A stretch of DNA of 63,982 bases, filler included, from Octopus bimaculoides (taxonomy: Eukaryota), in the NCBI RefSeq assembly GCF_001194135.2. It is 4 parts of 4 records of this genome, joined end to end, with 100 filler letters (N's around TTAATTAATTAA, not from the genome) between each part and the next. Parts side by side here need not be neighbours in the genome. Positions count along the whole stretch, not along the records: positions 1 to 25,971 come from NC_068988.1; 3 more parts are not named here. The stretch is one strand, 5' to 3'. The position numbers and the translations under genes are program-made. Below are positions 1-23,345 of the stretch, one piece after another (within the stretch, counting starts at the first letter, position 1; every line of letters begins with the position of its first letter). The notes under the pieces are model-generated. The model was not told the DNA's origin and searched no databases. It worked only from the letters and a program-made list of their open reading frames with translations.

Positions 1-66
1 CTTTTACTTGTTTCGGTCATTTGACTGCGGCCATGCTGGAGCACCGCCTTTAGTCGAGCAAATCGA
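1..66 (-). mobile_element. SINE family A (octopus-type), 3' end fragment
   Basis: Reverse complement matches the 3' end of the full copy at 49910-50329 (cgactaaaggcggtgctccagcatggccgcagtcaaatgac). Confidence 0.85.
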
Positions 67-911
67 AAAGCGATGTATATTGGGCAGATGGCTCTTCTGA
101 AAAACGTATCGTTTGTATTGTACATAATTATTATATCTGTATGGTGAATGTTATATATAAGCAATGTTATCACAATAATGCACCTCTTTCTTCTGACACA
201 TAGAAAAGAAGAATATGGCAACATCGTTATCTCTTTGGATTTGGAATTTGAAAATATCCTTCTGTTTATTTCCATATCAAATGGAAGATCCTAAAGGAGT
301 GCAGACAATATGTAAATAGATGAGAGAAAAGCATAGCTGAGAAGAGTTCCATACAGAAAGATTTTAACATTTACGAAATTATCTAAACGATCAGAAATCA
401 TTAAGTGATATTTTCACTATGATAAATACCTTCTATATATAGTTCGAACTGATCGCGCCACCATTAACTAGACCAACATTTCAATTTCAGTTATTTCTTT
501 TATCTTACATCCCCCCAATTTATACTTATCTTTATAAACGCCAGTACGTTTTCGTAAATCTTTATATATTTCTCCACCCGTTTCACTCCTTAATTGACAT
601 CCCCTACTCACAATTTACTAATTTTTATAACTCTTGTATTTTACACATGTTATGTAGTTATTTATTTTATTTCTTAAAGTTATCTTTTGCTTATATATCA
701 TTATATTCATTTTTCTACATAGTACATTATTTCACCGAAGAAAATAATATTTCTATATAACAAATTGCGGCCCATAAAATTCTCTTTTACATTAGTATGA
801 AATATGAAACCCACATCTTTAACACATCCAAACTTTTATCAACACAAAAAACTTTGCATATTATATTACTGACCGTTATATTTGAGATTAGATGCTGTAA
901 ATAAGTGGGCA

Positions 912-949
<38 letters not shown>

Positions 950-956
<7 letters not shown>

Positions 957-2270
957 AAGATATTTTAACTGGAAATTTTCTCTGGAATATCTTTGCCATA
1001 AAATGCATAATGGTACCTGCAGACTAACATAATGTAATTAGTCACATACAATAATTAATAGATTCGTCGTGTCTCTGCTTTATGAAGGGAGTCTATAACA
1101 GAAGAATGCCCTGGTCGTTACCCAAACTTACATCTCACTACATGGTACAATTCAGGCTTTAATATATTAAGAATTTGGGAATTTTCTCCCTTACATCTCT
1201 GGCTATGTGATTGACATTAATGCAACTGGTTCGTCTTCTAATTACGGGTGCAGTTTCAATTTATAAAATGTCGTTTAACCTATATCTAACTGTATTGAAA
1301 CGTATCCATCTAGTTGGTTTCGGAGCCTTCATACCTCCATGCATTACTTACCTGACAATTTATAAGTCTAAACTCTAAGCAGTTGCTCAAAGAATTAGAA
1401 ATTACAACCAAAACTTAATCATATCGCACGTCACGACTTTAGAACCCATTCTGATACTGTTCAATGATGGCTGCAATTTTGAGAATATAATGGCTGCAAT
1501 TTCTGGAATATAAAACGTTATTCAATCCGGGCTCCAACAAACTTATTGCTAAACAACAATAACGAGACTTCCAAGATGCTAAGCTGTCTTCTGTTACAGT
1601 GACATACATTTGCCAATTGTACCTAACTCATCTCTCAGCTGATCGTCATTACAAACCCATTTTATAGTTTTGACTCTGCAGTATTTTTCATAACCTTTTT
1701 TAAGTAGCGACATGTTTATACTTTTTTTAGGGTAGATGAACATGCATCAAACCAACCTTAATATATACCTTAGGCACCTCTATGGATCGAAGCTAAATCA
1801 AAGTGTATGTAGTCTTGTCCAGATCTTAACACTGACGTCAGAGTAAAGAATATTGCGAAGAGGTTTGTTCCCAAATTGGAATAGTTATTTGAGAAGTCCA
1901 TACTTTACTCGGAGGACGTTATCAACATTTACACTAATCCAAAATACAAGTTTAATCATACCTTCATTTCATGAAGATTCTAACTTCTTACAATAATCTC
2001 TTATCTCTGGCCACTCCTCTTTCAACCGCCTTAATAATAATTGATTTATTGCAAAATAAAAATAAAGTAAACAAGCTCACAGCTACCAATATACTGCGAA
2101 GTTAGAATCCAATACTTTTGTTCAAGTATATACATGTGATTTGTTTCAAGCATTTTATTGGCATAGGTCGGTGTATAGAAGTAGACATTGATTGGAAAAC
2201 GAAGCTTATGGTAAAACTGATAACTATCAAAACACTCTGGAGAGAAAGGAAAAAACGTGTTTAAGAAAAC
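950..2270 (+). mobile_element. Very decayed Penelope-like RT/GIY-YIG remnant inside the duplicated upstream region
   Basis: Motif fragments survive across frameshifts in PLE order: CFMKGVYNRRMPW (FM..E...P..W.RY), SFLD (clearer in copy 2, about 22018), SLH.S and AQRIRNY/FSQRIRNY (S.HP...YSQ.LRIRRI). Boundaries approximate. Confidence 0.45.
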
Positions 2271-2572
2271 TAAAATAGCCTAACGGCAACCTCTAGGGTT
2301 TGACGTAAGAGAATTTCAATTTGCTCACATATCTTTACAAAGGTAGAAAAGAATTGACGATATTGTTTTAAGAACATTTTTTTCGAATTCAGTGTTAAAT
2401 CAATTGGTTTCATCGATCTGTGTCAGAACAACGATAAAACAAAAACAAAATAACCCCGTTTACCGAAACTGGAAAACAAGCATCAAGTGGCAGATCTTGT
2501 TTGTAGTGAGACATTTCTGTTTCGCCGAATTCCAAGTAAAAGTGAATATTACATAGCAACTCTGTAACAGTC

Positions 2573-2585
2573 ATGAATCTGAAAG
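2573..2585 (+). CDS. Exon 1 (coding part MNLK+G) of a secreted PAN/apple-like protein gene
   Basis: ATG AAT CTG AAA G|gtaagt is a strong phase-1 donor, in phase with exon 2 (G|GA ATG). It is identical in the duplicate at 23272-23284. Confidence 0.55.
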
Positions 2586-3809
2586 GTAAGTGAATTAATG
2601 ATATTAGGAATCGAAAGAGAGATAATAAGTACAATTGTTTGTATAATTCTCTGTTGAAAAATACTGTCACTGATTTGTACTTTCATAACATTTGTTCTGT
2701 CATTACCATTTCCCATCTTCAAAGAGAGGGGAAGAGAAGACGGTGGGTTTGTAGAAGTTATGCACCTACTGCTAACATCTTTTGTAATTTTACATTCTGA
2801 TTTCGAATCCCACATAGATTTCTGTTCATCTACCCGTCTATTATGTGGCCATTATCTCTGAGAGAAATCATTTTTATTTTTAGATAGAGGGCAGTAAATC
2901 AGTCAATCATTCGAACTAAATGCCACTATTTAATCTCTATTCGACTTCCCCCTCTCGTATATGATATACAGAAATTCGATCCAAACGATTATATAACTTT
3001 GCTTCACAAAACTGCGTCTTTGTACATTTGTAAGAACATATTATCATTTCTAGTTAACGAGCGTTGTTTAAACCTATATTAATGGAACTCTTGATATCAG
3101 CTATAACCAGCAATATGACGTTATTGAATTAGCTTAACTCTAAATTCCTAAGACAGGGAGCAGTTGGGAAAAATACTTCTTCCGGACACTGTAACACGCT
3201 GTCTACATCTGGATATGAACCTATACGATTTTACAATTATTATTCACTCTCATGGTTCAGATTAGTACTGCAGTGAATGCACGTGATAAAAATAAGACTA
3301 CTAAATAATAATAATTCCATGTAACCACAACTGAAGTTACTGGAAAACATAGGAGGTTCTGGCTGAAGAAAAGAACACTAAAAATAAAAAGAGACCGAGA
3401 GCACAATACTGAAGGCTCAACCTTAGGAATGATCAAGTGTCTGAGCTGAGCGACATGTGTAACAGAGTGCATGAAACCATTGCGTAAATCACAAACGAAT
3501 GTCCTAGATTTGGTGACATGATCAAATAGCGAAAGTGTTACATTGGAGAATGTGCGAAAAATGGGGCTAGATGTGTTTTTCACAATAATAGAAATAATAG
3601 AGCGCAATATTTTTCCTATTCCTCCGAGTTCTGACGAGAACACAATATTAATTAGTCGTGCTGGTTTCTAACATCTCTTTTAATAGCTAGTGCGAAACCA
3701 ATTGGTAAGATTGGTGGTAATGAATATATTACACTGTACACTTTGATTAATATACCTATACTATAGACAGATATTTTTATACATATATTTTCTGATTCAT
3801 AGATTTTTA

Positions 3810-3841
<32 letters not shown>

Positions 3842-4326
3842 CTGCATATACATATATATATGTATGTATATATATATATATATATATATNNNNNNNNNNN
3901 NNNNNNNNNNNNNNNNNNNNNNNNNNNNNNNNNNNNNNNNNNNNNNNNNNNNNNNNNNNNNNNNNNNNNNNNNNNNNNNNNNNNNNNNNNNNNNNNNNNN
4001 NNNNNNNNNNNNNNNNNNNNNNNNNNNNNNNNNNNNNNNNNNNNNNNNNNNNNNNNNNNNNNNNNNNNNNNNNNNNNNNNNNNNNNNNNNNNNNNNNNNN
4101 NNNNNNNNNNNNNNNNNNNNNNNNNNNNNNNNNNNNNNNNNNNNNNNNNNNNNNNNNNNNNNNNNNNNNNNNNNNNNNNNNNNNNNNNNNNNNNNNNNNN
4201 NNNNNNNNNNNNNNNNNNNNNNNNNNNNNNNNNNNNNNNNNNNNNNNNNNNNNNNNNNNNNNNNNNNNNNNNNNNNNNNNNNNNNNNNNNNNNNNNNNNN
4301 NNNNNNNNNNNNNNNNNNNNNNNNNN

Positions 4327-4361
<35 letters not shown>

Positions 4362-4374
4362 GTATATTTTTCAG

Positions 4375-4704
4375 GAATGAGAACATCAATTCAATGTCAT
4401 TTGAGGCTGAAATCGCTGCAAGCTTTTGCACTAATATTTTTCATCCCTCCGATAAGCTGCAAAGCAGATTGTAAAGAAAGTAATTTCAAACGACTTACTA
4501 AATCAAAATGCTTATTAGGCCAATCTAGAATAACTGAAACGACGGCATCTCGTACCCAATGTGCAATTCGCTGTTTATCATGCGCTGCGTGTGGATATTT
4601 CAGCTATTGTAATGGCGTATGTCACATGCATCAACCGTTTTACTACCAAAAACTTGAAGATTATGATTGCGACTGTTCATCGTATATCTTGCTCAAAGAA
4701 AACG
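4375..4704 (+). CDS. Exon 2: signal peptide plus Cys-rich PAN/apple-like domain
   Basis: Acceptor tttttcag|GA, donor AAC G|gtatgt, 330 nt open. Encodes MRTSIQCHLRLKSLQAFALIFFIPPISCKADCKESNFKRLTKSKCLLGQSRITETTASRTQCAIRCLSCAACGYFSYCNGVCHMHQPFYYQKLEDYDCDCSSYILLKEN, with a C-x3-C...C..F.Y....C pattern. Confidence 0.88.
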
Positions 4705-4905
4705 GTATGTAAACCATATTTTTCTCGTCTTTTTTAGTCTTTGTGTTATATTTCCATCATTTATCTAACGTTATATATAAGTATGGGGGTTTAGTTCACA
4801 GGAGGTGAGTCCTGTAACGGATTTGTAGGTCTCCAAGGTTATAACTGAGACGGTAGTTATGGGGTCCTAGCAAGTTTCTGATGCAGCGGATATATAATTT
4901 TTAAA

Positions 4906-5053
4906 TTTCTCTCTCTCAATCTCCTTATTCCTTTAATCACTTCCTCTCTGTAGTCATCTTATTAATATATACCATTCTCTTTTGCCCCTAGTTTTCCTTT
5001 TGTCTCTGATGATACAATATCCCATACTTGAGGATATCACAGAAACAGCTGTA
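4906..5053 (+). mobile_element. Solo Penelope-like pLTR fragment with target-site duplication (left arm of inverted pair)
   Basis: Flanked by tatataatttttaaa at 4891-4905 and 5052-5066. Ends in the hammerhead motif GAAACAGCTGTA. Confidence 0.75.
5002..5053 (+). ncRNA. Minimal type-I hammerhead ribozyme motif, truncated at its cleavage site
   Basis: gtct-CTGATGA-taca[atatcc catacttga ggatat]caca-GAAAC-AGCT-GTA. The 3' strand of stem I (agac) is absent. Confidence 0.6.
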
Positions 5054-5138
5054 TATAATTTTTAAAGAGGACAACCAAATTTAAGGCAAGGTAAACGTCG
5101 CAAGTTGTATGCAATATTATTATTGGAAAACATCTAAA

Positions 5139-5194
5139 GTCTTACAGCTGTTTCTGTGATATCCTCAAGTATGGGATATTGTATCATCAGAGAC
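5139..5194 (-). ncRNA. Minimal type-I hammerhead ribozyme motif, complete consensus
   Basis: Minus strand reads gtct CTGATGA tacaatatcc catacttga ggatatcaca GAAAC AGCT GTA agac. Stem I is gtct/agac, stem II core is atatcc/ggatat, and stem III is the palindrome ACAGCTGT. The base of stem II is mismatched. Confidence 0.65.
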
Positions 5195-5290
5195 AAAAGG
5201 AAAACTAGGGGCAAAAGAGAATGGTATATATTAATGAGATGACTACAGACAGGAAGTGATTAAAGGAATAAGGAGATTGAGAGAGAGAAA
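5143..5290 (-). mobile_element. Second pLTR copy, right arm of a 148-bp inverted repeat
   Basis: Reverse complement of 4906-5053 with two visible mismatches; 89-bp spacer. Confidence 0.9.
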
Positions 5291-5494
5291 AGAAAAGAAA
5301 AAAAGGCATAAATTTCATAATTTAGCTTCATGATGATGTCGCAAATACAAGAACTTGAGTCCTTAGGTATCCTGAGTATATCTATGGATATAAATCATTG
5401 GAAGTAATCCTGTGTAGATCCATGTGGGTTAAGGTCTTGATGTGATACGATCTATAAAGAAAAAGGGACACGAATATCTCAACGTCCAATAGTA

Positions 5495-5674
5495 GTACCT
5501 GTATTTCAAAGGGCCAGCCTTGTCGCACTCTGTGTCCCGCCGAATCTCCCTGGGAACTACGTTAAGAGTACACGTGTCTGTGGAGTTCTCAGTCACTTGC
5601 ACGTTAATTTCACGAGCAAGCTGTTCCGTTGATCGGATCAGCTGGGACCCTCATCGTCGTAACCGACGGAGTGC
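5495..5674 (+). mobile_element. SINE family B, 3' half
   Basis: gtacctgtatttcaaagggccagccttgtc...cgtaaccgacggagtgc. Near-identical to 12844-13028, and its 3' end recurs at 60679-60718. Confidence 0.85.
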
Positions 5675-5679
5675 TCCTA

Positions 5680-7640
5680 TTAGAAACAGAGAAAAACATA
5701 CTAGACCGTCAAATAAACCCCCAAAATTATTTTCATAAGGTGAAAATATATATAGTATACTCACATCTAAGAACAAGAGAAAACACATACCTAACCAAAC
5801 ACCACAACCAAAATCCAAAGCTCGCCAGAGAAAAGATGTTAATAATAGAAGAAATAATAGACAAAAAGGAATCTATTTTTGAAGGTCAGGACAGCAGACA
5901 CCAGAGAAAGAAACTGACCAAGAAAAAACAACTGAGAAACTACTGAGAGGATAGACCCTAGAAATATTAATCTGTCAAAAAGAAATATTGGTAGTGACAA
6001 ACGGCAGGACTAAAATTCACACCTACAGTCAACCATCAGGAAATGGAGGAAAATATTCCAAACAAACTACAGCTTGTGGAGTTTTTTACTGATAAAAATA
6101 ATGACAATGACGAATCCTTGGCGATCAAAATTTATTCCGCCAAAAGACGAAATACACATTTAGATCAATGCATTGATATCTTCTGCAGATTTCTACGTCA
6201 CATCAAACATTTCAAAACGAGAAAAGTCTGCCCTTATACGTCTTAAAAATGACAACACAATTGACATCAAAGAAGCAGATAAAGGGGATACCATTTTCAT
6301 AATGGATACGGAATATTACCAGGGTTTAGCTGAAGATCATTTGAAGGATAAAACGTTTTACCATGAAATACCCTGAAATATTGACCTCTGCATCAGGATG
6401 AAACTCAATTATTTAGTATTAAAACATTATAACTCCCTCACTCCGAATGAAAGGGACTATATTAACACTTTTGAGTCGAAATCCAGCTACTTCTGTGGCT
6501 TACCTAAAATACAGGAGTCAAAATAAATACGATACGCTATGAAGGAACAAGGTAGTGGATGCATAAAACTATTACAACCAAGAAAAAAATTAAACTAATA
6601 CCCATTATAACTGATCCAGTCTGTCCTACACATCGTCGGAGCAACCTCATTGGCATTATCCTAAAACCACTATGTAGTCACCTATTGAGTTTCATTCGGG
6701 ATGGCATCGATTTCCTGTCACATCTGCCCAAAACAACAGAATCCAATTCGCTGTTAGTTTTGATGTAGAAAACTTATATAAGAACATTCCACATGATTTG
6801 GGAATTACTGCCATAAAATATTGGGTCGAGAAACATAGAGAAGTGATCCCCAGTAGATTTACTGTTATAAGGTCGTGAGTTCAATTCCTGGCAGTCAGCC
6901 TCATCCTCGAAAACAATACATTCCTTTTCAACGGAGGCACAGCTATGAGGACGCGATTTGCTCCAGTTTTCATGAACTCAGTATTGGGATACTTGGGAAA
7001 AAGAAGTATATAAAAAAAGTGAAGAAAAGTACGGCATGACCTTTAGAAGATAGCGAGAGGACACATGGAAAAGATAACTCGATGATCGTTTCCTAATTTG
7101 AACGAAATCCCTAAAAAATCTGGAATAACTCAGCACCCTCCTCAACACTCCACACCCTAGTCTCAAATTCACAAGAGAAATGAGTAACATACAATTACCA
7201 TTTCTTGACATAATGGTAATTAAAAACAACACGACAATCATAACTAATATTTATTACGAAATCACAGATGCACAGCAGCACCTAAATTTCAAATCATGCC
7301 GGCCAACACACATAAAATGTAACATCCCGCACTGTCTAGCCAGGAAAATTTGTACTATGGTAGATGATCCAAATAACAGAAACATACGACTTATAGAACC
7401 CAAAGGATTTCTACTCAAGCAGAAAAAGCATACAACGAGCAAAAGAAAATAGCATACAGCGAGCAAAAGAGATACCTACAGAACAACTTAGGACAACACG
7501 AGAAGCACGAACCCATCAACGGAACTCAAAGCCATTTCTAGTAACACACAATCCGCATTATCAAAACATTTTTTAACAAATGTTCCAATCATGAAAGAAA
7601 GTGAAAAATTTGAAAACATGGTAACAGGAAAATATTATAT
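5680..7640 (+). mobile_element. Penelope-like retroelement, degenerate reverse transcriptase, 3'-truncated
   Basis: Frameshifted motifs in order: IDIKEADKGDTIFIMD, FCGLPKI, LIPIITDPVCPTH, FDVENLYKNIPH, QLPFLDIMV, HLNFKSCRPTHIKCNIPHCLARKIC. Same family as 53340-55850. Confidence 0.88.
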
Positions 7641-7772
7641 CGCATTCAATGATTTTAGAATCGGCTCAGTTAATTTTCATTGTACTGTGTGCTACATATT
7701 TCCTTTAACATCTTAATAAAGCTTCTGTGCACTTAAATATAACTCATTGATATCCATTTCTGGTTGTTTCAG

Positions 7773-7864
7773 GCCAAAACTGGCAGAAAGTATTTAAGCT
7801 GACCGAAAGATCATATGAAAGAAGCCCTCTTTATTTATACTGGGAGAATTTACCTATTGAAAAG
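7773..7864 (+). CDS. Exon 3 of the PAN-like gene
   Basis: Acceptor ttgtttcag|GC, donor AAG|gtaata, 92 nt, phase 1 to 0. Encodes (G)QNWQKVFKLTERSYERSPLYLYWENLPIEK. Confidence 0.8.
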
Positions 7865-8119
7865 GTAATACAGTTTTGAATTTTCAAAATGATACACATT
7901 TAAATAACAGATTCTCAGTTCCCTGTCTCTTGTGATGTATGATTTTTACCTTTTCCTGTCGATATTGCAGTGGTGTATGTAATTAGTGCTGCTGGGGTTG
8001 TCCATGTCCTTTCTGCTGCTTAACCTTTACATTCAATCAAGATCCAGTTTTGGTTCCTTGTCTTATTTTCGTACATAGTATATCTAGTTCTGTATTTAGG
8101 AGATGAGGAATAATGTACA

Positions 8120-8204
8120 TTATTTACATTATTTATATTTGACGGATACTTGTTAACAAACAAGATGAGGGCAAATATCCGTCAAATATAAATAATGTAA
8201 ATAA
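8120..8204. repeat. Perfect 29-bp inverted repeat with 27-bp spacer
   Basis: ttatttacattatttatatttgacggata (8120-8148) and tatccgtcaaatataaataatgtaaataa (8176-8204). Confidence 0.95.
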
Positions 8205-8279
8205 CGTAAATAATATAGTATATCTATAACAAGATAATCCAATGTGTTTTATTATTAGGTGGTACGGTATAATCTGAGA

Positions 8280-8858
8280 GAGGTTTGCCTTCTATTTCTT
8301 GCAGATTAAGTGAAAACATGTGAGGTTAAAATGGAGTGTGGCATAAAGTCATATCAACTATGGTGGAAGTGTTATCATAGAAATTGTTTTGCCTTGGTAT
8401 AAAAGATGAGCTACAGCAAATATTCTGGTTAGTACCAGAGATTTGCTTGTCAATTGCTTGACCATAACCACTTGAGCACGTTCCTTAGTGGCTGACAATA
8501 TGTGCATCTCTGATCACGAGCAGAAGTAGTTGGAGAGTACCATAGCGATGTGTTGAGAGGAATTCTTGGGAGTTTGAATTATTCACCTCTAGAAACATTC
8601 ATCATTGACCATCCTTAAAATAAATCTTATTCAGGGATCTTTTGAGAAGAATGGGCTACACACCCTAAAGGAAAATATAACTGGGCCCCAACTTTAAAGT
8701 CATGCGCTGTTTATCTCGATGTAAGATCGCCATATCGTGCACATGTGGTTGTGATGCATGTACGTGGTGTAACATTATCAGACGTGTAGTCGAGATTGGT
8801 ATATTGGGCTTCTTTTATTTGTACCCCCAGTGTTTTTGATGACTTACGCTGTTCCCTC
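8280..8858 (+). mobile_element. Non-coding interspersed element (family E) with (AAT)n tail
   Basis: Homologous to 9662-9995 (aaaagatg.gc.acagcaaatattctg...aactgggcccc) and followed directly by (AAT)24. Confidence 0.7.

Positions 8859-8930
<72 letters not shown>
8859..8930. repeat. (AAT)24 microsatellite
   Basis: Direct reading. Confidence 0.98.
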
Positions 8931-9466
8931 TGCACTCCTCTGGAACTTCACCATTCAAACTGACAGAAAGATAGATGCAAATAGGCCAGACATCATACTG
9001 AAAGACTTCAGACAAAAATCATGCCTCCTCATTGATATGACTGTCCCAGTCGATATAAACGTATCTGTCAAGACCTACCAAAAACTGAGCAAATATAAAG
9101 ATCTTGAAATAGAAATTAGCAAAATGTGGAATCTGAAAACGAAAACAATACCTATTNNNNNNNNNNNNNNNNNNNNNNNNNNNNNNNNNNNNNNNNNNNN
9201 NNNNNNNNNNNNNNNNNNNNNNNNNNNNNNNNNNNNNNNNNNNNNNNNNNNNNNNNNNNNNNNNNNNNNNNNNNNNNNNAATTTTAAAACAAACACATAA
9301 TTTTCTCATGGTTTCTTAAACATTCACTAGAACAAAACTGTACAAATCCAAATATATGGTACCCTAGGCATAACACCTACATGAACTTCTAACTTGTTGT
9401 CTCTTAAGGTCTCTGGGTGAGACTTGGATCCAACTTGTACAAATGCAAAACAAAAGTCAAACATAA
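8931..9466 (+). mobile_element. 5'-truncated Dong/R4-like non-LTR retrotransposon (restriction-like endonuclease and 3' UTR)
   Basis: LLWNFTIQTDRKIDANRPDIILKDFRQKSCLLIDMTVPVDINVSVKTYQKLSKYKDL contains the PD..D...K endonuclease pattern. (AAT)n lies on both sides; part of the element is in an N gap. Confidence 0.85.
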
Positions 9467-9543
<77 letters not shown>

Positions 9544-9554
9544 TAATAATAATA
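9467..9554. repeat. (AAT)n microsatellite
   Basis: Direct reading. Confidence 0.97.
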
Positions 9555-9661
9555 ACTTCAGCTAATGATGTTGATATTACAGATCTCAACCACTTGTACT
9601 ATGGATCCGCAAAAATCTCAACGATTCTATGTGGTGAAAAGATTAGAAAATCATTTTAACT

Positions 9662-9995
9662 GATTGGAGGTGTTATCATGTACATGTTTTGTCTTAGAAT
9701 AAAAGATGGGCCACAGCAAATATTCTGCTCAATACCACAGATTTGCTTGATGGTTATTTGACTTTAACCAGTTGAGCATGTCCTTTAGTAGCTGACGATA
9801 TGTGCATCTCTAATCACGAGCAGAGGTATTGGAGGATTATCATAGCAATATGTTGAGAGAAATTCTTTGGGATTTGAGGTAATTCACCTCTTGGAACATG
9901 GGTCTTTTATTCATCGTCCTTAAAACAAACCTTATTCTGGGTCCTTTTGAACAGCATGAGATACTCTCGACTTAAAGAATGTTGTAACTGGGCCC
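9662..9995 (+). mobile_element. Family E element, second and partial copy
   Basis: Homologous to about 8370-8695. Confidence 0.7.
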
Positions 9996-10837
9996 CGTCT
10001 CCGAGTTCGACGTTTCCTTTCATCATTCCCAAGACGATAAAATATTGAGCCAGACGTCCTACTATAAGAGACGGGGGAATTCATAATCAGCAACATAACC
10101 AAAGAGTGTTTGGAAATTGATTCGGTGTGTTGAGTAGGATTATCTCAAGGTTATGAAATAAACTGGTGTTGAAAGATCTGAATGACGGAGGATTCAATCT
10201 CTCTACCGGTGTGTCGGCGTAGAAAGAATATGAAAGATGTAAAAGAAATTTCGAACGTTGAAACAAATGAGAAAGGCGATTTAAGGAGTTTGAAGGGTGC
10301 TGAAAGAGAACTTGAAACAACGCGGAATGATTACTTCAAAGCATAATAACAGGATGTTTCAACTGCTAAACTAAGTTCGAAATGGGTCTGGTGAGTGGTT
10401 TTAAGGTAAGGTAAATAAAGTTTAGTAATCGTGTGTTACAGAAAGACGGATAGAAATATAGATATGATTGTGGCTCAGAGATGAGAGCTGTTTTGTTTCT
10501 CACTTTAATAAGAACTGCTGGATGAGTGAAATTTAGAAGGAACTTAACGAATATCAATGTTACATTGAGGTAGAATTGATTCTTGCTGATGTTGTCTTTC
10601 GCCTTGTTTCTGTTCTGAATTTGTCAAGATTTTGTACTCTTCACAGATGCAATAGAACTTTTTCAAAAATTCTGAAATCCCAATATATAGTCTGATTCAT
10701 TGCCTTGTAAATCACGTATATTTTTTCCTAAACCCAAACACTTTCGCTTCCTTTATCGTGCATTTCCATCACAATTTTCGCAATCAGCTCTTTCTTTATT
10801 TCCACCCCCTCTCTCTCTCTCTATCTCTCTTCCTCTC

Positions 10838-10879
<42 letters not shown>

Positions 10880-11163
10880 CACATAATATATTACCCTTCC
10901 ATTTTNNNNNNNNNNATTGCCTTGTAAATCACGTATATTTTTTCCTAAACCCAAACACTTTCGCTTCCTTTATCGTGCATTTCCATCACAATTTTCGCAA
11001 TCAGCTCTTTCTTTATTTCCACCCCCTCTCTCTCTCTACCTCACTTCCTCACCCGCTTTCTCTCTCCTTATATCTCATCTTTATCTTCTTTCTCTTTCTG
11101 CTACTCACTCCTCTCTCACTCTTTTACATTCTTTATCAATCCTTGTCAACTTTTCTTTTACAG

Positions 11164-11312
11164 GTGAAATTTCTGGCGAGAGCAACTCAGCGAGATTTCG
11201 TATTCATTTTCAATGGAACAGGGACGGATTCTACATCATGGTACCGAAATGATAAACTCATTGAACAGCCTTTGGCATGGAACACTCAATACAACTTTAC
11301 ATCCAACAATGA
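11164..11312 (+). CDS. Exon 4 of the PAN-like gene
   Basis: Long pyrimidine tract ending ttttacag|GTG; donor GA|gtatat is weaker; 149 nt, phase 0 to 2. Encodes VKFLARATQRDFVFIFNGTGTDSTSWYRNDKLIEQPLAWNTQYNFTSNN. Confidence 0.8.
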
Positions 11313-11557
11313 GTATATATTATCTCTTTATTTGTGTTAACATCTTTGATGTTTTCGTGATAATAATAATGATTTCCTGCTGTCAAAGAATCATCGCATA
11401 TTTTGAGGGATATTTTTTAATGATTTCATTAATTAACAGGTATTAATTTACCGAGCCTGGAATAATGAGAGGCATGTTTTAGCTTGCTAGGATTTGAACT
11501 CAAAACGTTAAGGAAAGAAACTATCACAAGTTGCTGGTTCTTACATTCACTGTCTTC

Positions 11558-11558
<1 letters not shown>

Positions 11559-11607
<49 letters not shown>
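11559..11607. repeat. (GTA)n microsatellite
   Basis: Direct reading. Confidence 0.95.
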
Positions 11608-12312
11608 TTTAATCTTAATCTTCGTTATTTGAGGTTTTCTCAAAGTGGTTTTGTATTCAGCGACAATAGCGAGTCCCACCAGGAGTATAATATGAGGACT
11701 AATACAGGAAAGACATCAACTAGAAACGTTTTTCACTGAAATATTACCATAAAAGAAGTAGAAAACTGTCGAAATAAAAGGTTCTTCAAATCGAAATATT
11801 TTAGAGGTGGGGCCTGAAAGTGAAAACCATACCAAAAATATTTGGAAATTTTTAGGTATGACAAAAGATATAAACATAGAAACCATACTAAGACATACAA
11901 CACTACACATTGTCCAGAATTATAGGACCATCCTACATCCTGCGCGAAGTATTATTAATTCAACAGCACAATCCAAATAGAACAATCTTCAAACACACAA
12001 TACAATTTATAAAATAAGCACCTAATAGAATAAAACAATACAACTCAAGCAATATATACTCTACAAGATTAATGCCTAATAAAGTACACTTCACAAGAAA
12101 TCATCAAACACTGATATATTACATGAAACAACAGACTGAACTCCGTAGCAAAACAAAATCATGCACAGTTCTGACAGGTTAGAGCTATGCTACTCTATCC
12201 CACATAAAAATGAGAACAGAGAAAATGCTACACACATTTCAGAAACACGGAGATGCAACAAACGGTGCAATTGAAACTTGCATGAAACTATCAAAGAAAT
12301 ATCAACAATAGT

Positions 12313-12500
12313 TTCTAATTAAAGGACAAAGCCAGGGCTTTTGTGAGGACATAATCTAATACATCGACTCCAGTGTATAACTGTTGCTTTATTTTATAGA
12401 TTCTGGGGGTACATTTGAACTCAGAACATAAAAAACTGAAAGCAATACACCTACGCCATTCCAAACTGGCCATTCCAAATGCTGAACTACTGACCTTCTA
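12313..12500 (-). mobile_element. Degenerate SINE family C
   Basis: ttattttat...atttgaactcagaac...gaaagcaatac aligns to the reverse complement of 16323-16552. Confidence 0.6.
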
Positions 12501-12843
12501 TAATTATTTGTAAAGTAAGTACAAGAACTAAAATTTGCGGAGTAGAAGAAAGACGTTATTTTGGGGGGTTTCAAAAATTACGCGGTTCCATTATTAAGAC
12601 ATGTGGGGGTTGACGCAGTATCTGGTTTTCTAAAATATTCTCAATGATTTTTCCACTCAAATAGAACTTTGCCATTATTAGTCGATGTGATTCGAAATAC
12701 ATTGTGTCTAACAAAGAAATATGACAGGTTCACCATTGTTGGAAAGCTTTTTGATCATAGATCATCTTGATCACACCTGAATGAAACTCAATAACAAGAT
12801 ATGATTTATCTGAATTACATGTTATTTATACGTTCTATATCGT

Positions 12844-13028
12844 GTGCCTGTATTTCAAAGGGTCGGCCTTGTCACACTGTGTCACGCTGAATATCCCCGA
12901 GAACTACGTTAAGGGTACACGTGTCTGTGGAGTGCTCAGCCACTTGCACGTTAATTTCACGAGCAGGCTGTTCTGTTGATCGGATCAACTGGAACCCTCG
13001 ACGTCGTAAGCGACGGAGTTCCAACAAC
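12844..13028 (+). mobile_element. SINE family B, 3' half
   Basis: Near-identical to 5495-5674. Confidence 0.85.
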
Positions 13029-13123
13029 ATCGTGAATTACAAACGGGCTATGAGACACTCGCTAATCTCAATAGTGAAAAGGTAAATTCGTCAATTTAAT
13101 TAAGCAGAACTGACTCGTAAATA

Positions 13124-14332
13124 CGCAGACATGACAGAAGTAAATAGACACCCATATAATTGTTCAAATTTATTTAAATCTGAAATTATGTATTCAAATT
13201 ATGTACTGATTATTATAATGTGAATATCTAATATTTAGTAGACATGCCCACGGTATTTATCAATGTAAGGACCCTGTTAGGAATGTTATTGATTAGATTA
13301 ATATTCTCTTCAGGAATTTCTTGCCAAGTTACATGCAGTAATCTCAGAATATCTGGCTGGGAGCATGCCTTATTATCCTTTTTACGAAGTATGGATGCAA
13401 TAGGATTCATATCTGGTGACTAGCTTGGACGTGGAAGCTACTTAATGCTATTCTCTTCCACCCAATCTTGAGTCCTTTTAGCCGTGTGACATTTTCCATA
13501 AAAGGAGAGTCTCCTTTAATTATGTTTACCTCTGGAGAAGATTGGGAAAAATCACTTCAGCAATATGGACATATATTTATTTGAGTTTATGTTTTCCTCA
13601 ACCATTACTACAAATTGTTCCCCCAGACTGTCACAGAATAAACACCATGTTTCATTGTTGACTGCAATCTCTTCACATCAAATTCTTGACCTTAGAGTCT
13701 CCAGATCCACACTCGATCTCTGTCAGAAAATACAGCAAATCTGGACTCATCAGAGAATATGACAATGTCCCAAAATGCTAGTGGCCTCTCCACCATGTCA
13801 TTGGCTCCATCTCTTCTCCGCTTAATATTGGCTTGCCGAAGATGTGGCTTCCTTCTTTCTGCTTCGCCATTGTAGCCAAGTTCGTGGAGATACCTGACAG
13901 CTGTTCTCAGACTGACATCAACTTGTTCTGCTATGCCAGAGGCCTTGCAACGAGGATTATCCTACAGACTTCTCTTAACAAAGCGAAAGGTCCTGTGAGG
14001 AGGCCCTAATCGAACTGGGCAAAGTGATGTGGACTCCTTCCTTTCTCTGGTGATTTGCACAATCACTCTATTAACTGTAGAAAGCGGGATTCCAAGGTTT
14101 TCTGCAATTTTACGTTGGCGAAATCCACCTTCATATTGACTGACAATATGGTATCTGAAATTCGGACAGTTCTAAGGCTTTATTTGTACGTGGCATGATT
14201 AAACAGTCACCATATAGAAACTGAACCATAAAAATGTCAATTAACAAAAACAAATATGTACTTTTTCAAAATGGAAATAAACCTAAAACGATGTAATTTG
14301 GGGTGTCTATTTATTTCTCTCATGGTTGGGCA
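13124..14332 (-). mobile_element. Tc1-like DNA transposon (about 1.2 kb) with terminal inverted repeats
   Basis: TIR cores catgacagaagtaaatagacaccc (13130-13153) and gggtgtctatttatttctctcatg (14301-14324) match at 22 of 24 positions, with TA just outside each end. Outer edges approximate. Confidence 0.88.
13228..14196 (-). pseudogene. Tc1-family transposase, frameshifted
   Basis: Starts MPRTNKALELSEFQ, continues GGFRQRKIAENLGIPLSTVNRVI (HTH) and WDIVIFSDESRF (first catalytic D), and ends WQEIPEEN...IPNRVLTLINTVGMSTKY*. Confidence 0.88.
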
Positions 14333-14384
14333 TAGTTGTTCAAGTTTTCATTATGACAAATCTTATTATATTTATCAATTGTAG

Positions 14385-14494
14385 TATCACAGAACCGTAT
14401 TTTCGTATCGATTATGGAGCAACTTCTAATTACGGTAATTGGATGGAAACCAAAATAGTAAATGGAACGTACGAAATTTATTACAATTCCAATG
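14385..14494 (+). CDS. Exon 5 of the PAN-like gene
   Basis: Acceptor caattgtag|T, donor AAT G|gtatgt, 110 nt, phase 2 to 1. Encodes (D)ITEPYFRIDYGATSNYGNWMETKIVNGTYEIYYNSN. Confidence 0.8.
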
Positions 14495-14616
14495 GTATGT
14501 AAAATGTATCATCCTGTTTGTGAGTGCAAATAATTGTATGACAGTATGTTTGTATACACATATATATTACGTGTATGTATATATATTACGAGTATGAGTA
14601 TATATGTTTGTCTGTA

Positions 14617-14699
<83 letters not shown>

Positions 14700-14940
14700 T
14701 GAGAGAGAGAGAGAGAGAGTGAGAGAAAGGTTATGAAAGGTAATGGTGTCAATAAAACCCAAAGGTGTCAGGTAATGCTAAGTAAGTGCTATGGACAGAC
14801 TACAGTTAAGCGCCTGGTTCGGTGATTATGTGAATGAGGAGTCCAACGTAGGTCATATATCAGCATGTGTATATATAAAAAAAATTAACAGAATGAGATA
14901 AAAATCCAAGGCTGTGAAAAATTTTAGAACATTTATTAAT

Positions 14941-15280
14941 AGGTCTTACAGTTGTTTCCGGGATATTTTATATATCCTTCATCGGAAACGGTGTGAGAAA
15001 ATGGTTAAGCAATAGTTATTCTAGATAAGATATGAAATAGAGAGTGAAGTGGAGGAATGACAATAGACGTGAGATATGCAGGGATATTGCATCTGTAGAT
15101 CCATTATTTAGGCAGAATAGTATACATAACTTGATTCCAGTACCTTGTGAGTAAGTTCCAATAGTATTTAAAATTGGTCATTCCAAGCGTAGAGTTTGTA
15201 CACGGTGTTATTGAATCAAGGGTTTTATTTAAAGTGACTTAAAATTTGGGAATGCATTTGTAAGGGATATGCCCTGTTTT
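14941..15280 (-). mobile_element. Penelope-like 3' tail with degenerate hammerhead motif
   Basis: Minus strand reads ccgatga a ggatat ataaa atatcc cg GAAAC AACT GTA agac, the same motif family as 5139-5194. Confidence 0.6.
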
Positions 15281-15423
15281 GTGTGCATGGCATATATGTA
15301 TCTTGGTGTGTGTTAACATTCATACACATTTGTATCAATATATGTATATATCTATGTATGTTCATTGAGAAATAGAGTTAACTTCATTAATTTTTAAATT
15401 TTACTCTTTGTTTTTTTTTTCAG

Positions 15424-15473
15424 GCAAGTACAATTCTATTACAGAATTGGTCATCTCAGTCCTTTTCAAGTAG
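15424..15473 (+). CDS. Exon 6 (terminal coding exon) of the PAN-like gene
   Basis: Acceptor tttttttttcag|GC, phase 1. Encodes (G)KYNSITELVISVLFK* with TAG at 15471-15473. Confidence 0.78.
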
Positions 15474-15580
15474 AATACGTTTTATTCCAGAAATTGTGTA
15501 TCATTATAGTCTTACTTGTATACATACAAACAAACATACGTACAAACATACATACATACATGCATACATGCATACATACA

Positions 15581-15611
<31 letters not shown>

Positions 15612-15682
15612 GTACGTACGTATAGCACATATACACAGATAACTAGATGGACAAACAGACAGACAGTGCAAATGCAGTGAAC

Positions 15683-15688
15683 AATAAA
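15683..15688 (+). promoter_or_regulatory. Candidate polyadenylation signal AATAAA
   Basis: First AATAAA I found after the stop codon, about 210 nt downstream. Such hexamers are common in AT-rich DNA. Confidence 0.35.
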
Positions 15689-15799
15689 ATCAGATATTGC
15701 AGGAAGGACAAGGTTCAGCTTAAATGGCATTAATTTAACATTTTAATGGGGATAGAAATAGTTGTAACATTAGGGGCGGTAGACCTTTTACTGGAAGAA

Positions 15800-16220
15800 A
15801 GACAAAAGCATACGGGACTGCGTAAGTGGAGTAGTCAGTGAGTGAGAGAATAAAGCAGACGAAGTGTTAGGAAATGCGGTTCTATGAAAGGAAGTTAAGA
15901 AGGAAGGAGGGGTGGGTGTTTGTGTGCAAGTGTAGGCGAGTATTAATGTGTGGTAAGTGGCACAAAAGGAACTGGTATGTGAGTGGTTGTTTGGCGCGTG
16001 TGAAGAGATAGAAACAGACGAGAGTTTTAAGCAAATGAAAAGGCAAGAGTCATGAGGAAGATGTGATAGATGTGTGTGTCTAAGAGTATGGGTGTGAGAT
16101 GTCTCTTACACAGAAGGAAGGCTTGAGGTAAAGGAAGCAAAAGAGAGAGAAAAGACACGAGTCCTGTGAGAGAAGAATGGAGGAAAAAAATATCTGAAAA
16201 TTACAAGACACAGGTAAAAT
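15800..16220 (-). mobile_element. Degenerate CR1/L2-like LINE 3' fragment
   Basis: Minus strand resembles a LINE RT C-terminal region (L.PL...R.VSSL.LFY). Heavily decayed; boundaries approximate. Confidence 0.45.
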
Positions 16221-16322
16221 CTAAGTCAAAGCAAATAAGAGAAAAATACACACACGTGCAGATATATATATATACACACATATATACATACATACATATA
16301 TGTATGGCATACATATAAGTAC

Positions 16323-16552
16323 GGCGAGCTGGCAGAAACGTTAGCACGCCGGGCGAAATGCTTAGCGGTATTTCGTCTGTCGCTACGTTCTGAGTTCAAA
16401 TTCCGCCGAGGTCGATTTTGCCTTTCATCCTTTCGGGGTCGATTAAATAAGTACCAGTTACACATTGGGGTCGATATAATCGACTTAATCCGTGTTTGTC
16501 TGTCCTTGTTTGTCCCCTCTGCGTGTAGCCCCTTGTGGGTAGTAAAGAAATA
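16323..16552 (+). mobile_element. SINE family C, full length, tRNA-related head
   Basis: ggcgagctggcagaaacgttagc...gagttcaaattcc (B-box-like)...cttgtgggtagtaaagaaata. Confidence 0.9.
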
Positions 16553-17854
16553 ACACACACACACACATATATNNNNNNNNNNTGCATTTATAATACAATA
16601 AATATAAACAAATTGTAATTTTTATAAAATATACAGTACAGTACTGCTTCTACTTCGTGGATTTTCACCTGGCGCTGGGGTTTTGGAATGTAATACCTGC
16701 GATAGTCGAGGGATTACTGTATTACTGTATATATATATATATATATATATATAAAGAAATACAGAAAATGGGAAAACAACGCAAAACATCCAGACAGTTA
16801 GATGATACAAAAAAGGGACAAGAAAAAACAAGGAGATTTCGGAAATTTCTTTCCTCAGTCGAGTTCCAAATTATCTTTACAATTTCGGCTGGTTATACTC
16901 GAGATTGGCCAATCTGACCAGCCCCAAAGAAAAACTAAACTAAGAGCACTAGGTTACTTGGAAGAAAGCAGCGAATATATACGAATGTATATATGCATAT
17001 ATTATAATGTTTGTATTACTGTGAAGTTATAAAAACAATTTAACATTAAACTGAAGGAGTATGCAATATCTTCTAGTAGAGAACGTATTCATTTATCTTA
17101 AATCTTTTACAAAGAGTGGAGAAACAGTGACTTCGAAGGTTCTACCTGCTGGCCTTCGTCATATTGACTACAAATGTATGTGTGCATAAATCCTTTGTGT
17201 ATTTGCACATTTCTAAGAACGTCGATCCTTGTAACCTTGATACTAGTTAACGTACTGATTGGAAGATCAATCAATGATAAATTGAGTAACAAACTGCTCT
17301 TATTGTCCAAGTGATTTAATCTTAGACTTTTTTTGGTTGAGGCTAAAAATACCTCATCGTTTCACAGTTTTATCAGCCGTTAAAAACGCCACTGTTTGAC
17401 TTTATTTTATTACAAACTTGTAATAAATATATATATTATTAAGTATCTGAAGCTTTTGTTGCCCATATTTTAGATGATTTTCACATTACTTCACTGGATC
17501 TGAGATGAAATATTTTGGTGTAATATACGTGCGTGAGTGTGTGTGTGTGTGTGTGTGTATGTGTGCACGCGTATGCATTAAATTAATAGTTTGCAGAGAC
17601 GGAGCAGTCATTTAGATTTACAATAGGTTACTGGTATTTATCTTCTACGCCGCGTGGTATGATGAACTGCAATGTTTAACACAGTATTATTCCTAAATAC
17701 CAAATCTACAAATTCATCCGGACTTAAAAATTAAAAATAAGATACATCACCATGCATTTTTGTATATGTTGTTTATCTCCAGATGAGCTCGGATCGAAAG
17801 ACTTATGTTGAAAGGTATTCGGATCGTGTTCCTCAACTGTTCATGTATACTATA

Positions 17855-17894
17855 TAACGTGATCTAACGTGATCTAGCGTGATCTAACGTGATC
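17855..17894. repeat. 10-bp minisatellite, (TAACGTGATC) x4 with one variant unit
   Basis: taacgtgatc taacgtgatc tagcgtgatc taacgtgatc. Confidence 0.95.
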
Positions 17895-18049
17895 TGCTAA
17901 TTACAAGGTGATAGGAGGTAATTTGAAGGAATATGTCCGATACTTTAATGACTATACTATGACAGAACTATTATAAGCGTGTAAGAGTGTTTGTGAGTAT
18001 GTAAGAGGAGAGAAAGACAGCAATAGTGGGAGAGAAGGACTAAACTGCT

Positions 18050-18867: not shown

Positions 18868-18868
18868 G

Positions 18869-18917
<49 letters not shown>
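18868..18917. repeat. (ATT)n microsatellite
   Basis: Direct reading. Confidence 0.95.
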
Positions 18918-18918
<1 letters not shown>

Positions 18919-19694: not shown

Positions 19695-19726
<32 letters not shown>

Positions 19727-21059: not shown

Positions 21060-23345
21060 TATCAAATGGAAGATCCTAAAGGGGTGCAGACAATATATAA
21101 ATAGATGAGAGAAAAGTATAGCTGAGAAGAGTTCCATACAGAAAGATCTTAACATTTACGAAATTACCTAAACGATCAGAAATCATTAAGAGATGTTTTC
21201 ACTATGATAAATACCTCTTATAGTTCTGACTGATCGCGCCACCATTAACTAGACCAACATTTCAATTTCAGTTATTTCTTTTACCTTACATTCCTCCCAA
21301 TTTATACTTATCTTTATAAACGCCAGTACGTTTTCGTAAATCTTTATATATTTCTCCACCCGTTTCACTCCTTAGTTGACATTCTTCTACTCACAATCAT
21401 CAATGAACCTCTCCATTTTTTCTTTACTAATTTTTATAATTTTCCTATTTTACACATTTTATGTAGTTAGGTTTTGCTTAAATATTTATTATTTTCATTT
21501 TTCTGCATTATACATTTTTTTCACCAGAGAAAATATTTCTATATATAGGAAATTGTGGCCTATAAAATTCTCTTTTACATTTTTATGTAATGTAAAACCC
21601 ACATCTTTAACACATCCAAACTTTTATCAACACAAAAACTTTGAATTTAATATTACTGACCGTTATATTTGAGAATAGACGCTGTAAATAAGTGGACAGA
21701 ATCCATATATGTAAAGATATTTTTACTGGAAATTTTCTTTGGAATATCTTTTTTATAAAAAGCATAAAGGTTACCTGCAGACTAACATAATGTAATTAAT
21801 CACATACAATAATTAATAGATTCGTCTTGCCTCTGCTTTATGAAAAGACTCTGTAATACAGAAGAACGCCCTGATCGTTACCCAAACTTACATTTCACTA
21901 CATGGTACAATTTAGGCTTTAATATATTAAGAATTTTGGAATTTTCTCCCTTACATCTCTGGCTATGTGACTGGTTTGTCTCGTAATTACGGGTGCAGTT
22001 TCAATTCGTAAAATGTCGTTTCTAGACGCTCCATTGAGTAGTTTAATCTACACTTAACTGTATTGACACGTACTCATCTGGTTGGTTTCGAAGCCTTCAT
22101 TCGCCAAACATCACTTACCTGATAATCAGTGAGTCTAAAGTCTAAGCATTTTCTCAAAGAATTAGAAATTACAACCAATTCTTAATCATATCACACTTCA
22201 CCGTTTTAGAACTAATCCGAATAATTTGGCCTTTGTTCAACACTGTCTGCAAACAAAGACGAGATGATAATGGCTGCAATTCCTGGAATATAAAACGTTA
22301 CTCAATCCGGGCTCCAACAAAATTTGTTGCTAAACAACAATAGTAACACTGTTCCCAAATTCTAAGCTGTCTTCTGTTATAATGGCATACATTTCTCTAA
22401 ATTTACTAATTCTACTTAAACTCATCTCTTAGTTGCCCGTCATTATAAATACATTTTATTGTTTTAATTCTGCGATATTTCTTCTTCACATTTTTTTAAA
22501 TAGTGACAAGTTTAAACTTTGTTGGGTGGATAAACATGAATCCAGTTAAACTTAATATATCATATAGGCGTCTCTATCGATCGAAGCCAAATAAAAGTGA
22601 ATGTAGTCTTGGACAGATCGGAACGCATCCAAAATACAACCCCAATCACACCTTCATTTCATCACGATTTTAACCTCCTACAATTATCTATATCATCTCA
22701 CCACACCTTTTTCAACAGCCTTCATTATAATAAGTCTAGTGTAAAATAAATTAAACTGACAGCTATCAATATATTGCAAAGTTAGAATCCACTTCGTTTG
22801 TTCACCAAGTGCGTAGATACACGGGACTTGTTTCAAGTTATTTATTTGTATGGGTTGGTGAATAAAAGCGAATATTGATTGGAAAATGAAGCGTGTGATA
22901 AAACTGATAGTTTATTTATTATTTCAAAACACTCTGGAAAAGAAGAAAGAAAGTGTTGAAGAAAACTAAAATAGCCTGACGACAACTTCTAGAGTTAGAG
23001 GAAAAGTAATTTCAAGTTGTTCACATATCTTTACAAAGGTGGAAAAGAATTGACGATATTGTTTTAAGAACATATCTTTTTCGAATTCAGTGTCAAATCG
23101 ACTGGTTTCATCGATCTGTGTCAAAACAACTTTAAAAGAAATAAAAAATAACCCCGTTTACTGAAACTGGAAAAAAAAGCATCAAGTGGCGGATCTTGTT
23201 TATAGGGAGACACCTTTGTTTCAGCGAATTCCAAGTAAAAGTGAATATTACATAGCAAATCTGTAACAGTCATGAATCTGAAAGGTAAGTGAATTAATAT
23301 TATTAGGAATCGAACGACAGATAATAACCGTAATTGTTTGTATAA
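21060..23345 (+). repeat. Segmental duplication, copy 2 (upstream region and exon 1 of a paralogue)
   Basis: Collinear with 275-2646. Confidence 0.95.
23272..23284 (+). CDS. Putative exon 1 of a tandem paralogue (MNLK+G); downstream exons not found
   Basis: ATG AAT CTG AAA G|gtaagt, identical to 2573-2591. Confidence 0.4.

Follow-up and report, generated by a model that had tools for sequence, protein, structure and literature searches.

An Octopus-restricted, tandemly duplicated gene family predicted to encode secreted proteins that join a divergent PAN/apple module to a shortened form of an unnamed extracellular domain

We analysed a 63,982-nucleotide (nt) stretch of DNA from Octopus bimaculoides (RefSeq assembly GCF_001194135.2; the whole stretch is hereafter called the window) and describe a six-exon gene on the + strand of its first piece (2573-15473; positions 1 to 25,971 derive from NC_068988.1). 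The locus is RefSeq LOC106874575, listed as 'uncharacterized protein' [Octopus bimaculoides]. We are highly confident that it is a real, intact protein-coding gene of the expressed type, with a full product that is most likely 247 amino acids (aa) long. This product is predicted to consist of a cleavable signal peptide, one module that very probably has a divergent PAN/apple fold, and a cysteine-free, all-beta C-terminal domain. By profile comparison, the C-terminal half is very likely homologous to a wider invertebrate domain. On the sequences compared, the family is restricted to Octopus and tandemly duplicated. Our best overall explanation combines the gene, a secreted protein with a PAN module and a shortened domain, and a role in recognition, and we hold it to be reasonably likely as a whole.

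A six-exon gene with a conserved structure

When all GT/AG boundaries near the translated blocks were searched exhaustively, a single solution remained that gives 247 aa. It reproduces exactly a model proposed earlier from the DNA alone (the sequence-only reading), with five GT-AG introns in phases 1,1,0,2,1 and a coding sequence (CDS) of 744 nt including the TAG stop. The exons are as follows.

Exon 1, 2573..2585, + strand: ATG followed by 10 nt, which complete MNLK and supply base 1 of the Gly5 codon; donor gtaagt, phase 1
Exon 2, 4375..4704, + strand: 330 nt, symmetric phase 1-1; remainder of the predicted signal peptide to ~4460 and the entire PAN/apple module at ~4461-4703
Exon 3, 7773..7864, + strand: start of the C-terminal domain (GQNWQKVFK...LPIEK)
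Exon 4, 11164..11312, + strand: conserved core of the C-terminal domain (VKF...IFNGTGTDSTSWYRNDKLI...)
Exon 5, 14385..14494, + strand: variable part of the C-terminal domain
Exon 6, 15424..15473, + strand: last beta strand (…ITELVISVLFK) and TAG stop

The donors of the five introns read gtaagt, gtatgt, gtaata, gtatat and gtatgt, and each acceptor has a pyrimidine tract (tttcag, ttacag or ttgtag). Exon 4 is the stretch that aligns best with the wider invertebrate domain. The surrounding piece is AT-rich (34% G+C), with many microsatellites and six runs of N. Database relatives match the 247-aa model at E 3e-112, far beyond chance, and paralogue P0004 has the same six blocks as the window gene.

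According to the sequence-only reading, orthologues without these splice sites or frames would speak against the model. The Octopus sinensis orthologue (LOC118764387) keeps all five intron positions, the phases and the frame, with exons of 13, 330, 101, 149, 110 and 50 nt against 13, 330, 92, 149, 110 and 50 nt in O. bimaculoides. For exon 3, the annotated O. sinensis acceptor lies 9 nt further upstream (101 nt, +3 aa), with the phase kept; exon 2 (9834-10163 of the O. sinensis locus, L002) has the same length and acceptor in both species. The reconstructed O. sinensis open reading frame (ORF) is intact and encodes 250 aa.

Described as hidden in the sequence-only reading, the gene turned out to be annotated already. 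An exact look-up showed that an earlier RefSeq version of its product, XP_014777839.1 (242 aa), is identical to model residues 6-247 and starts MRTSIQ. Exons 2-6 and four of the five junctions had thus been predicted independently, and the sole addition to that earlier annotation is the 13-nt exon 1 (MNLK plus G, 5 residues). The current version, XP_014777839.2 (159 aa; P0002), is 100% identical to residues 89-247 and starts at the internal Met89, so that the 247-aa model restores 88 residues comprising the leader and most of the PAN module.

Current RefSeq CDS of LOC106874575, 4626..15473, + strand: positions 10001-20848 of the chromosome record L001 correspond to window 4626-15473

The RefSeq model of the O. 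sinensis orthologue (190 aa) likewise begins at an internal Met, and exons 1 and 2 are intact in that genome. The N-terminal truncation is therefore common to the current RefSeq models of both species.

A predicted secreted precursor with a divergent PAN/apple module

The precursor would begin with a cleavable signal peptide, cut around Cys33/Lys34. The Kyte-Doolittle maximum falls at residues 18-33 (LQAFALIFFIPPISC), with basic residues K4, R7, R15 and K17 in the N-terminal part, and I31 and C33 stand at -3 and -1 of the putative cleavage site, where the paralogues have G at -1. In an AlphaFold2 model of the exon 2 peptide, the first 27 residues have a predicted local distance difference test (pLDDT) score below 50; the hydrophobic stretch at the C-terminus of the protein is modelled by AlphaFold2 as the last beta strand. 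The putative leader named in the sequence-only reading is seen in two measures, hydropathy and the low confidence of the modelled N-terminus.

Ten cysteines lie in residues 34-114 and none in residues 115-247, which agrees with the earlier counts of ten in the N-terminal domain and none in the C-terminal half, as do the three sequons (NGT, NFT and NGT). All ten are present in the window protein, but only eight (C50, C67, C71, C77, C83, C87, C103 and C105) are family-wide; C37 and C74 are private to the window copy. The second part of the precursor would accordingly be one PAN/apple module (~residues 36-112) with the eight family-conserved cysteines probably forming four disulfides.

The call of a PAN/apple module, and the suggestion in the sequence-only reading that residues 36-112 be checked for such a fold, were followed up by structure prediction and by searches at the family level. 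The AlphaFold2 model of the exon 2 peptide (mean pLDDT 69; core 74-88; leader disordered) has a helix at 59-68 and strands at 37-41, 44-47, 51-55, 74-78, 81-85, 94-97 and 101-105, in keeping with the PAN fold, in which one alpha helix packs on a central antiparallel sheet within ~70-90 residues. When this model was compared with the PDB by Foldseek, the top 50 matches were all PAN/apple-type modules, namely the HGF N domain, plasminogen, factor XI, prekallikrein, microneme proteins, a fungal oxidase PAN domain and MANEC. Most of the top matches had a probability of 1.00, with a root-mean-square deviation of 2.2-2.6 Å over ~80 columns and a query TM-score (TMq) of ~0.55; TMq ranged from 0.39 to 0.57 over the top 50, with a query that included 29 disordered leader residues. 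In sequence, C67-x3-C71-x5-C77-G-Y-F-S-Y aligns with the prekallikrein apple core C-x3-C-x5-C-x-F-F-[ST]-[YF].

Among the family members, 12 of 19 match PAN_1; P0017 reaches 22.4 bits, above the gathering cut-off of 21.4, and the others score 13-20 bits. Several paralogues are named 'Apple domain-containing protein' in UniRef. A family profile that included the window exon 2 matched apple/PAN chains only when compared with PDB sequences (E 0.05-6.6), and against 1.84 billion representatives it matched multi-PAN proteins at E 1.5e-9 to 1e-4. Seven of the proteins matched by the profile were scanned in Pfam; six were PAN repeat proteins with PAN_1 or PAN_4 above threshold and one had no Pfam match, and the three strongest of the PAN repeat proteins reach PAN_1 scores of 54-82 bits. 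The fold matches, the family-level hidden Markov model (HMM) scores and the profile matches, which among solved structures fall on apple domains only, all support the PAN/apple assignment. MANEC, an eight-cysteine PAN variant, appeared as a structural match only at rank 46-47 and gave no Pfam match, and was not adopted as the class of this module.

A C-terminal domain related to a widespread unnamed family

The third part of the precursor would be a cysteine-free, all-beta domain of ~130 aa with three N-glycosylation sequons, at N162 (NGT), N189 (NFT) and N221 (NGT); 19% of the residues in the C-terminal half are aromatic. AlphaFold2 modelled the 159-aa P0002 with a pLDDT of 84-92 over its residues 30-159, as an all-beta structure of about ten strands and one short helix, in which the strand at 145-158 ends on the '…VISVLFK' tail. 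The closest fold matches of this model (LolA-like proteins, GH16, galectin-like sandwiches and small barrels) have TM-scores of 0.2-0.4 and are not interpretable.

Positions ~125-205 of the family profile match many proteins outside octopus, from amphioxus, Ptychodera, Acanthaster, Mytilus, Saccostrea, Dreissena, Mizuhopecten and Mya, all of them 'uncharacterized' or named for other domains. These proteins define a wider extracellular domain (alignment A7) of ~187 aa, often present in tandem, that amphioxus and hemichordates share with a sea star, bivalves and octopus; its partners in these proteins are ZP, EGF, C-type lectin, sushi, kringle, D8C or PAN modules. A reverse HMM built without octopus-family sequences matches the window's own product P0002 at 42.9 bits, and hhalign joins the octopus family to the wider domain with a probability of 99.0% (E 4.8e-18, 92 columns). 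The sequence-only reading had been reminded by this half of an uncharacterized domain in secreted proteins of marine invertebrates; profile searches, reverse HMM and hhalign confirm that hunch, and the domain has no Pfam family.

The octopus subfamily retains the W-x-K-V-F start, the Y-L-Y-W..L-P-I..V-K core and the F-N-G-T-G-T..S-W-F motif. Three invariant positions of A7 are present (W3, W53 and F77, which are the Trp of W-Q-K-V-F, the Trp of Y-L-Y-W and the Phe of I-F-N-G), whereas invariant C139 and C157 and ~55 residues are absent. With both cysteines and this stretch missing, the octopus domain is a shortened, Cys-less variant and not a canonical member; as judged from the alignments, it is a derivative of the wider domain that has lost the loop carrying the two invariant cysteines. 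In a comparison of consensus sequences, outside the part aligned by hhalign, the '…VISVLFK' tail is similar to the 'AD..AIYI' with which the wider domain ends.

Among the 21 members scanned, the wider domain has no Pfam family of its own, and its profile gave only two chance-level matches among PDB sequences, with no solved relative. A word-indexed protein search with the wider-domain alignment gave eight matches, of which one had an informative name ('Fibrinogen C-terminal') that was not reproduced. The four-copy amphioxus protein matched Pfam DUF7922 with 32 bits summed over its copies (gathering 25) in the W..L.I..VKV region, with no single stretch passing, and DUF7922 matched neither the 21 single-domain members nor the octopus family at E <= 10.

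A fast-evolving Octopus family

All named close relatives of the window protein come from Octopus (O. bimaculoides, O. sinensis and O. vulgaris). Counted by LOC numbers, several of which are consecutive, the family comprises at least 9 O. bimaculoides loci and 13 or more from O. sinensis. These observations support the expansion behind the lineage-specific protein proposed by the sequence-only reading. Two O. sinensis paralogues differ in layout. P0001 (LOC118764386) has a single PAN module followed by two tandem copies of the C-terminal domain, and in P0020 (LOC118761499) MNLK is joined directly to the C-terminal domain with no PAN block, which fits the idea that exon 2, in phase 1 at both ends, is a symmetric cassette.

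The O. bimaculoides and O. sinensis orthologues share 67% aa identity. For this one species pair and 247 codons, synonymous divergence (dS) is 0.17 and nonsynonymous divergence (dN) 0.21, giving a dN/dS of 1.26; the first, second and third codon positions differ at 54, 42 and 37 sites, respectively. Conserved cores at residues 61-114, 159-178 and 236-247 alternate with variable stretches at 34-60, 147-158 and 179-235, the last being the most variable both among paralogues and between the orthologues.

Proposed role

The mature product of ~25 kDa would be secreted and N-glycosylated and would act as a soluble binding or recognition protein. By analogy with PAN/apple modules elsewhere, its PAN module may offer a surface to which proteins or glycans bind. 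In the C-terminal domain, the conserved half would serve as a scaffold, and the hypervariable half (residues ~147-158 and 179-235) could let ligand specificity differ from one paralogue or species to another. A conserved scaffold with a hypervariable surface is typical of immune-recognition, secretory-gland and chemical-communication repertoires. A secreted binding protein under diversification is a role that we regard as possible, if short of probable. More tentative still is a broader proposal, in which the C-terminal half represents an undescribed extracellular beta-domain family of cephalochordates, hemichordates, echinoderms and molluscs that was trimmed, fused to PAN and tandemly expanded in octopus, its variable half being under diversifying selection as part of a candidate recognition system.

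Several observations weigh against this account. The gene model is known here from genomic sequence and protein records alone, the 247-aa form has no match in the protein collection by exact look-up, and the current RefSeq version has been shortened to 159 aa. Pfam gives no match for the 247-aa model or for XP_014777839.1, even at E <= 10. The mean pLDDT of 69 for the PAN model signifies moderate confidence, and its Foldseek E-values are 5e-3 or worse. For the C-terminal model, a fold search of the PDB and of viral predicted structures returned nothing at E <= 0.001 (best E 0.02, TM-score <= 0.41). Restriction to Octopus depends on the cephalopod proteomes in the databases, and a dN/dS near 1 is also expected under relaxed constraint.

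Alternative explanations

Two alternatives concern the gene itself. It is improbable that translation starts at Met6 in exon 2, with exon 1 a non-coding 5' exon or outside the transcript; the precursor would then have 242 aa, and the mature protein would be unchanged. Such a start is the one that XP_014777839.1 uses, exon 1 contributes only 13 coding nt, an assembly gap lies between exons 1 and 2, and the flanking non-coding DNA is about as conserved as exon 1, so that conservation of exon 1 alone is no proof of coding. Use of the exon 1 ATG is supported instead by the gene models of paralogues: across three data sources, most full-length models begin MNLKG or MNVKG with the same ATG and gtaag donor, and this ATG and donor also stand at the annotated start of P0004 (L003 4482). 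The ATG, the 13-nt length and the donor are moreover kept in four copies, including the O. sinensis orthologue (L002 6922-6934, ATGAATGTTAAAG followed by gtaaga, MNVK), and a strong phase 1 acceptor precedes exon 2. We likewise give little credence to the view that the locus is a young non-functional or dying duplicate whose open frame is a leftover and whose protein is inactive. The dN/dS of ~1.26 without an excess of third-position changes, an exon divergence (17.9%) close to that of the introns (~17-25%), the shortened RefSeq model and the redundancy that a large tandem family makes plausible would all fit decay. However, the ORF is intact in both species, whereas in neutral, substitution-only simulations with the observed 133 substitutions it stays open in 0.015% of cases, a conservative figure because indels are ignored. 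The five intron positions and phases, the eight family cysteines and the core motifs are all kept, and the orthologue differences fall predominantly in columns where the other paralogues vary too (Mann-Whitney p = 3e-8). With open frame, splice sites and cysteines all kept, the fast evolution of this gene is not simple decay.

The other two concern what the protein is. Were the C-terminal domain a very divergent fibrinogen-related (FReD) domain, the protein would be a PAN-FReD lectin, which we consider very unlikely. The idea draws on one Mytilus coruscus member of the wider domain that UniRef names 'Fibrinogen C-terminal domain-containing protein', a label reproduced by no test, and on the motif order W-x-[LV]-V-F-[KQ] ... 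W ... C ... G-W-[LW] ... C, which we take to be loosely FReD-like. Pfam, however, finds no Fibrinogen_C in the 21 wider-family members (E <= 10) or in the octopus family, the wider-family profile picks out no FReD chain from the PDB sequences (E <= 10), the 50 best Foldseek matches of the C-terminal model include no FReD structure, and the octopus proteins are without both cysteines of that motif. The family could also be a salivary-gland or venom component, used on prey and not in self-defence or signalling. Small, disulfide-rich secretions, lineage-specific expansion and fast evolution are general hallmarks of gland-secretion families, and the octopus proteins are small, predicted to be secreted and disulfide-rich, with a lineage-specific tandem expansion and fast evolution. 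Against this, no named toxin family was matched in Pfam, the PDB or the fold search, and our literature search found no paper that mentions LOC106874575, 12 paralogue LOC identifiers, DUF7922, or octopus together with an apple/PAN domain. A salivary-gland or venom role seems to us an outside chance.

Relation to known proteins

The octopus module resembles PAN/apple domains (PF00024 and PF14295; HGF, plasminogen, factor XI, prekallikrein, MIC4, MIC5 and SML-2) in its predicted helix-on-antiparallel-sheet fold and its predicted extracellular, disulfide-bonded character, and, as in HGF and plasminogen, it stands at the N-terminus of its protein, here one predicted to be secreted. It differs from the classic modules in having eight conserved cysteines where they have four to six, and the window protein lies below every Pfam reporting level. 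Unlike HGF/plasminogen-type proteins, the octopus proteins fuse a single module to a partner that is neither a protease nor a kringle.

Examples of the wider domain include amphioxus XP_078667427 (four copies plus ZP), the Branchiostoma lanceolatum 'HMCN1' CAH1238943, Ptychodera XP_070568449, Acanthaster XP_022098360, Mytilus XP_076085371, Dreissena KAH3750350 and Octopus sinensis XP_036365309. The octopus family shares with them the core Y-x-Y-W..L-P-I..V-K..F-N-G-x-G-[ST]...W-F, but besides being ~55 residues shorter and without C139/C157, it has no long insert after the first strand. A PAN-plus-domain architecture is common to the octopus family, Dreissena KAH3750350, amphioxus and other octopus proteins (such as XP_036365309). 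In contrast to the wider-domain mosaics, the octopus subfamily is confined to small proteins with two domains.

Full models would correct two RefSeq entries (LOC106874575 and LOC118764387) that now lack the leader and most of the PAN module, and would change the predicted localization from unknown to secreted. The family offers a clean example of a lineage-restricted, tandemly expanded, fast-evolving family of predicted secreted proteins in octopus and is tied to a widespread unnamed extracellular domain, definable as a new family, whose predicted fold is unlike solved structures. Should ligands prove to bind at the variable half, these proteins would become candidates for a part in innate recognition or secretion in octopus. 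Public annotation already includes the gene, and the finding answers no long-standing question; what it usefully contributes is a corrected N-terminus and a tie to an invertebrate domain that has neither a name nor a structural match.

A second tandem copy, assembly gaps and repeats

The gene is followed in the same orientation, ~7.8 kb beyond its stop codon, by the 5' end of a tandem paralogue.

Upstream block, 275..2572, + strand: putative promoter and 5' untranslated region, duplicated together with exon 1; promoter role inferred
Second exon 1, 23272..23284, + strand: ATGAATCTGAAAG followed by gtaagt; 5' end of the next tandem paralogue

The second copy comprises the upstream block, exon 1 and part of intron 1. 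Positions 275-2647 are ~80% identical to 21060-23346, and share 82% identity with the sequence that precedes the O. sinensis orthologue; within intron 1, 24830-25110 is ~80% identical to 3570-3843. A tblastn search found no further matches to exons 2-6 in the window, and no exon 2 of the second copy appears before the piece ends at 25971.

Three assembly gaps lie within the gene.

Gap 1, 3890..4326, no strand: intron 1; flanked on either side by (TA)n; 48 nt before the exon 2 acceptor
Gap 2, 9157..9279, no strand: intron 3
Gap 3, 10906..10915 (10 N), no strand: intron 3; a restart duplicate lies on either side (block 10699..11050)

No reading frame spans a gap, because all three are intronic (introns 1 and 3). 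Synteny with O. sinensis was used as the check on the gaps, the sole public record with the annotated product of this gene being of the same assembly (GCA_001194135.2, CM046608.1) and having identical N runs. In O. sinensis, where the locus has no gaps, the sequence matching window 64-18806 is collinear with it through all six exons and past every gap, with order and orientation kept. The flanks of gap 1 map to L002 9062-9695 and 9800-10234, with ~105-110 nt of non-coding sequence between them in O. sinensis. At gap 3, a direct duplicate of 137 nt (97% identity; 10699-10835 and 10916-11050) has its second copy beginning at the first base after the gap and ending 113 nt before exon 4. Since O. 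sinensis has this sequence in single copy, the duplicate is probably an assembly artefact, an unmerged contig overlap; intron 3 is therefore likely ~217 nt shorter than drawn. Around gap 2, 8345-8689 and 9647-9996 are 77% identical and both map to one O. sinensis segment (L002 ~22281-22988). They are either members of a repeat family or the result of an intronic duplication or misassembly, with no exon affected. In the chromosome record, the window starts directly after a 3,530-N gap (L001 1846-5375), and the region upstream of ~275 is therefore also uncertain.

Broken ORFs on the + strand at 5520-7452 and 8830-9156 may be retroelement polyprotein-like (LPFLD...Y..T...L.F.S..P; DM.VP.D.N...K..K..KY.DLE.E), and the longest of these intronic pieces had no Pfam match. 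The segment 19442-19760 matches L002 in reverse orientation and adjoins a (CATA)n array at 19606-19740; its translation is suggestive of a tRNA-derived short interspersed element, but ARAGORN found no tRNA gene there. A 178-nt element with 88% identity between its two copies, at 5495-5672 in intron 2 and 12844-13019 in intron 4, is probably a short interspersed repeat.

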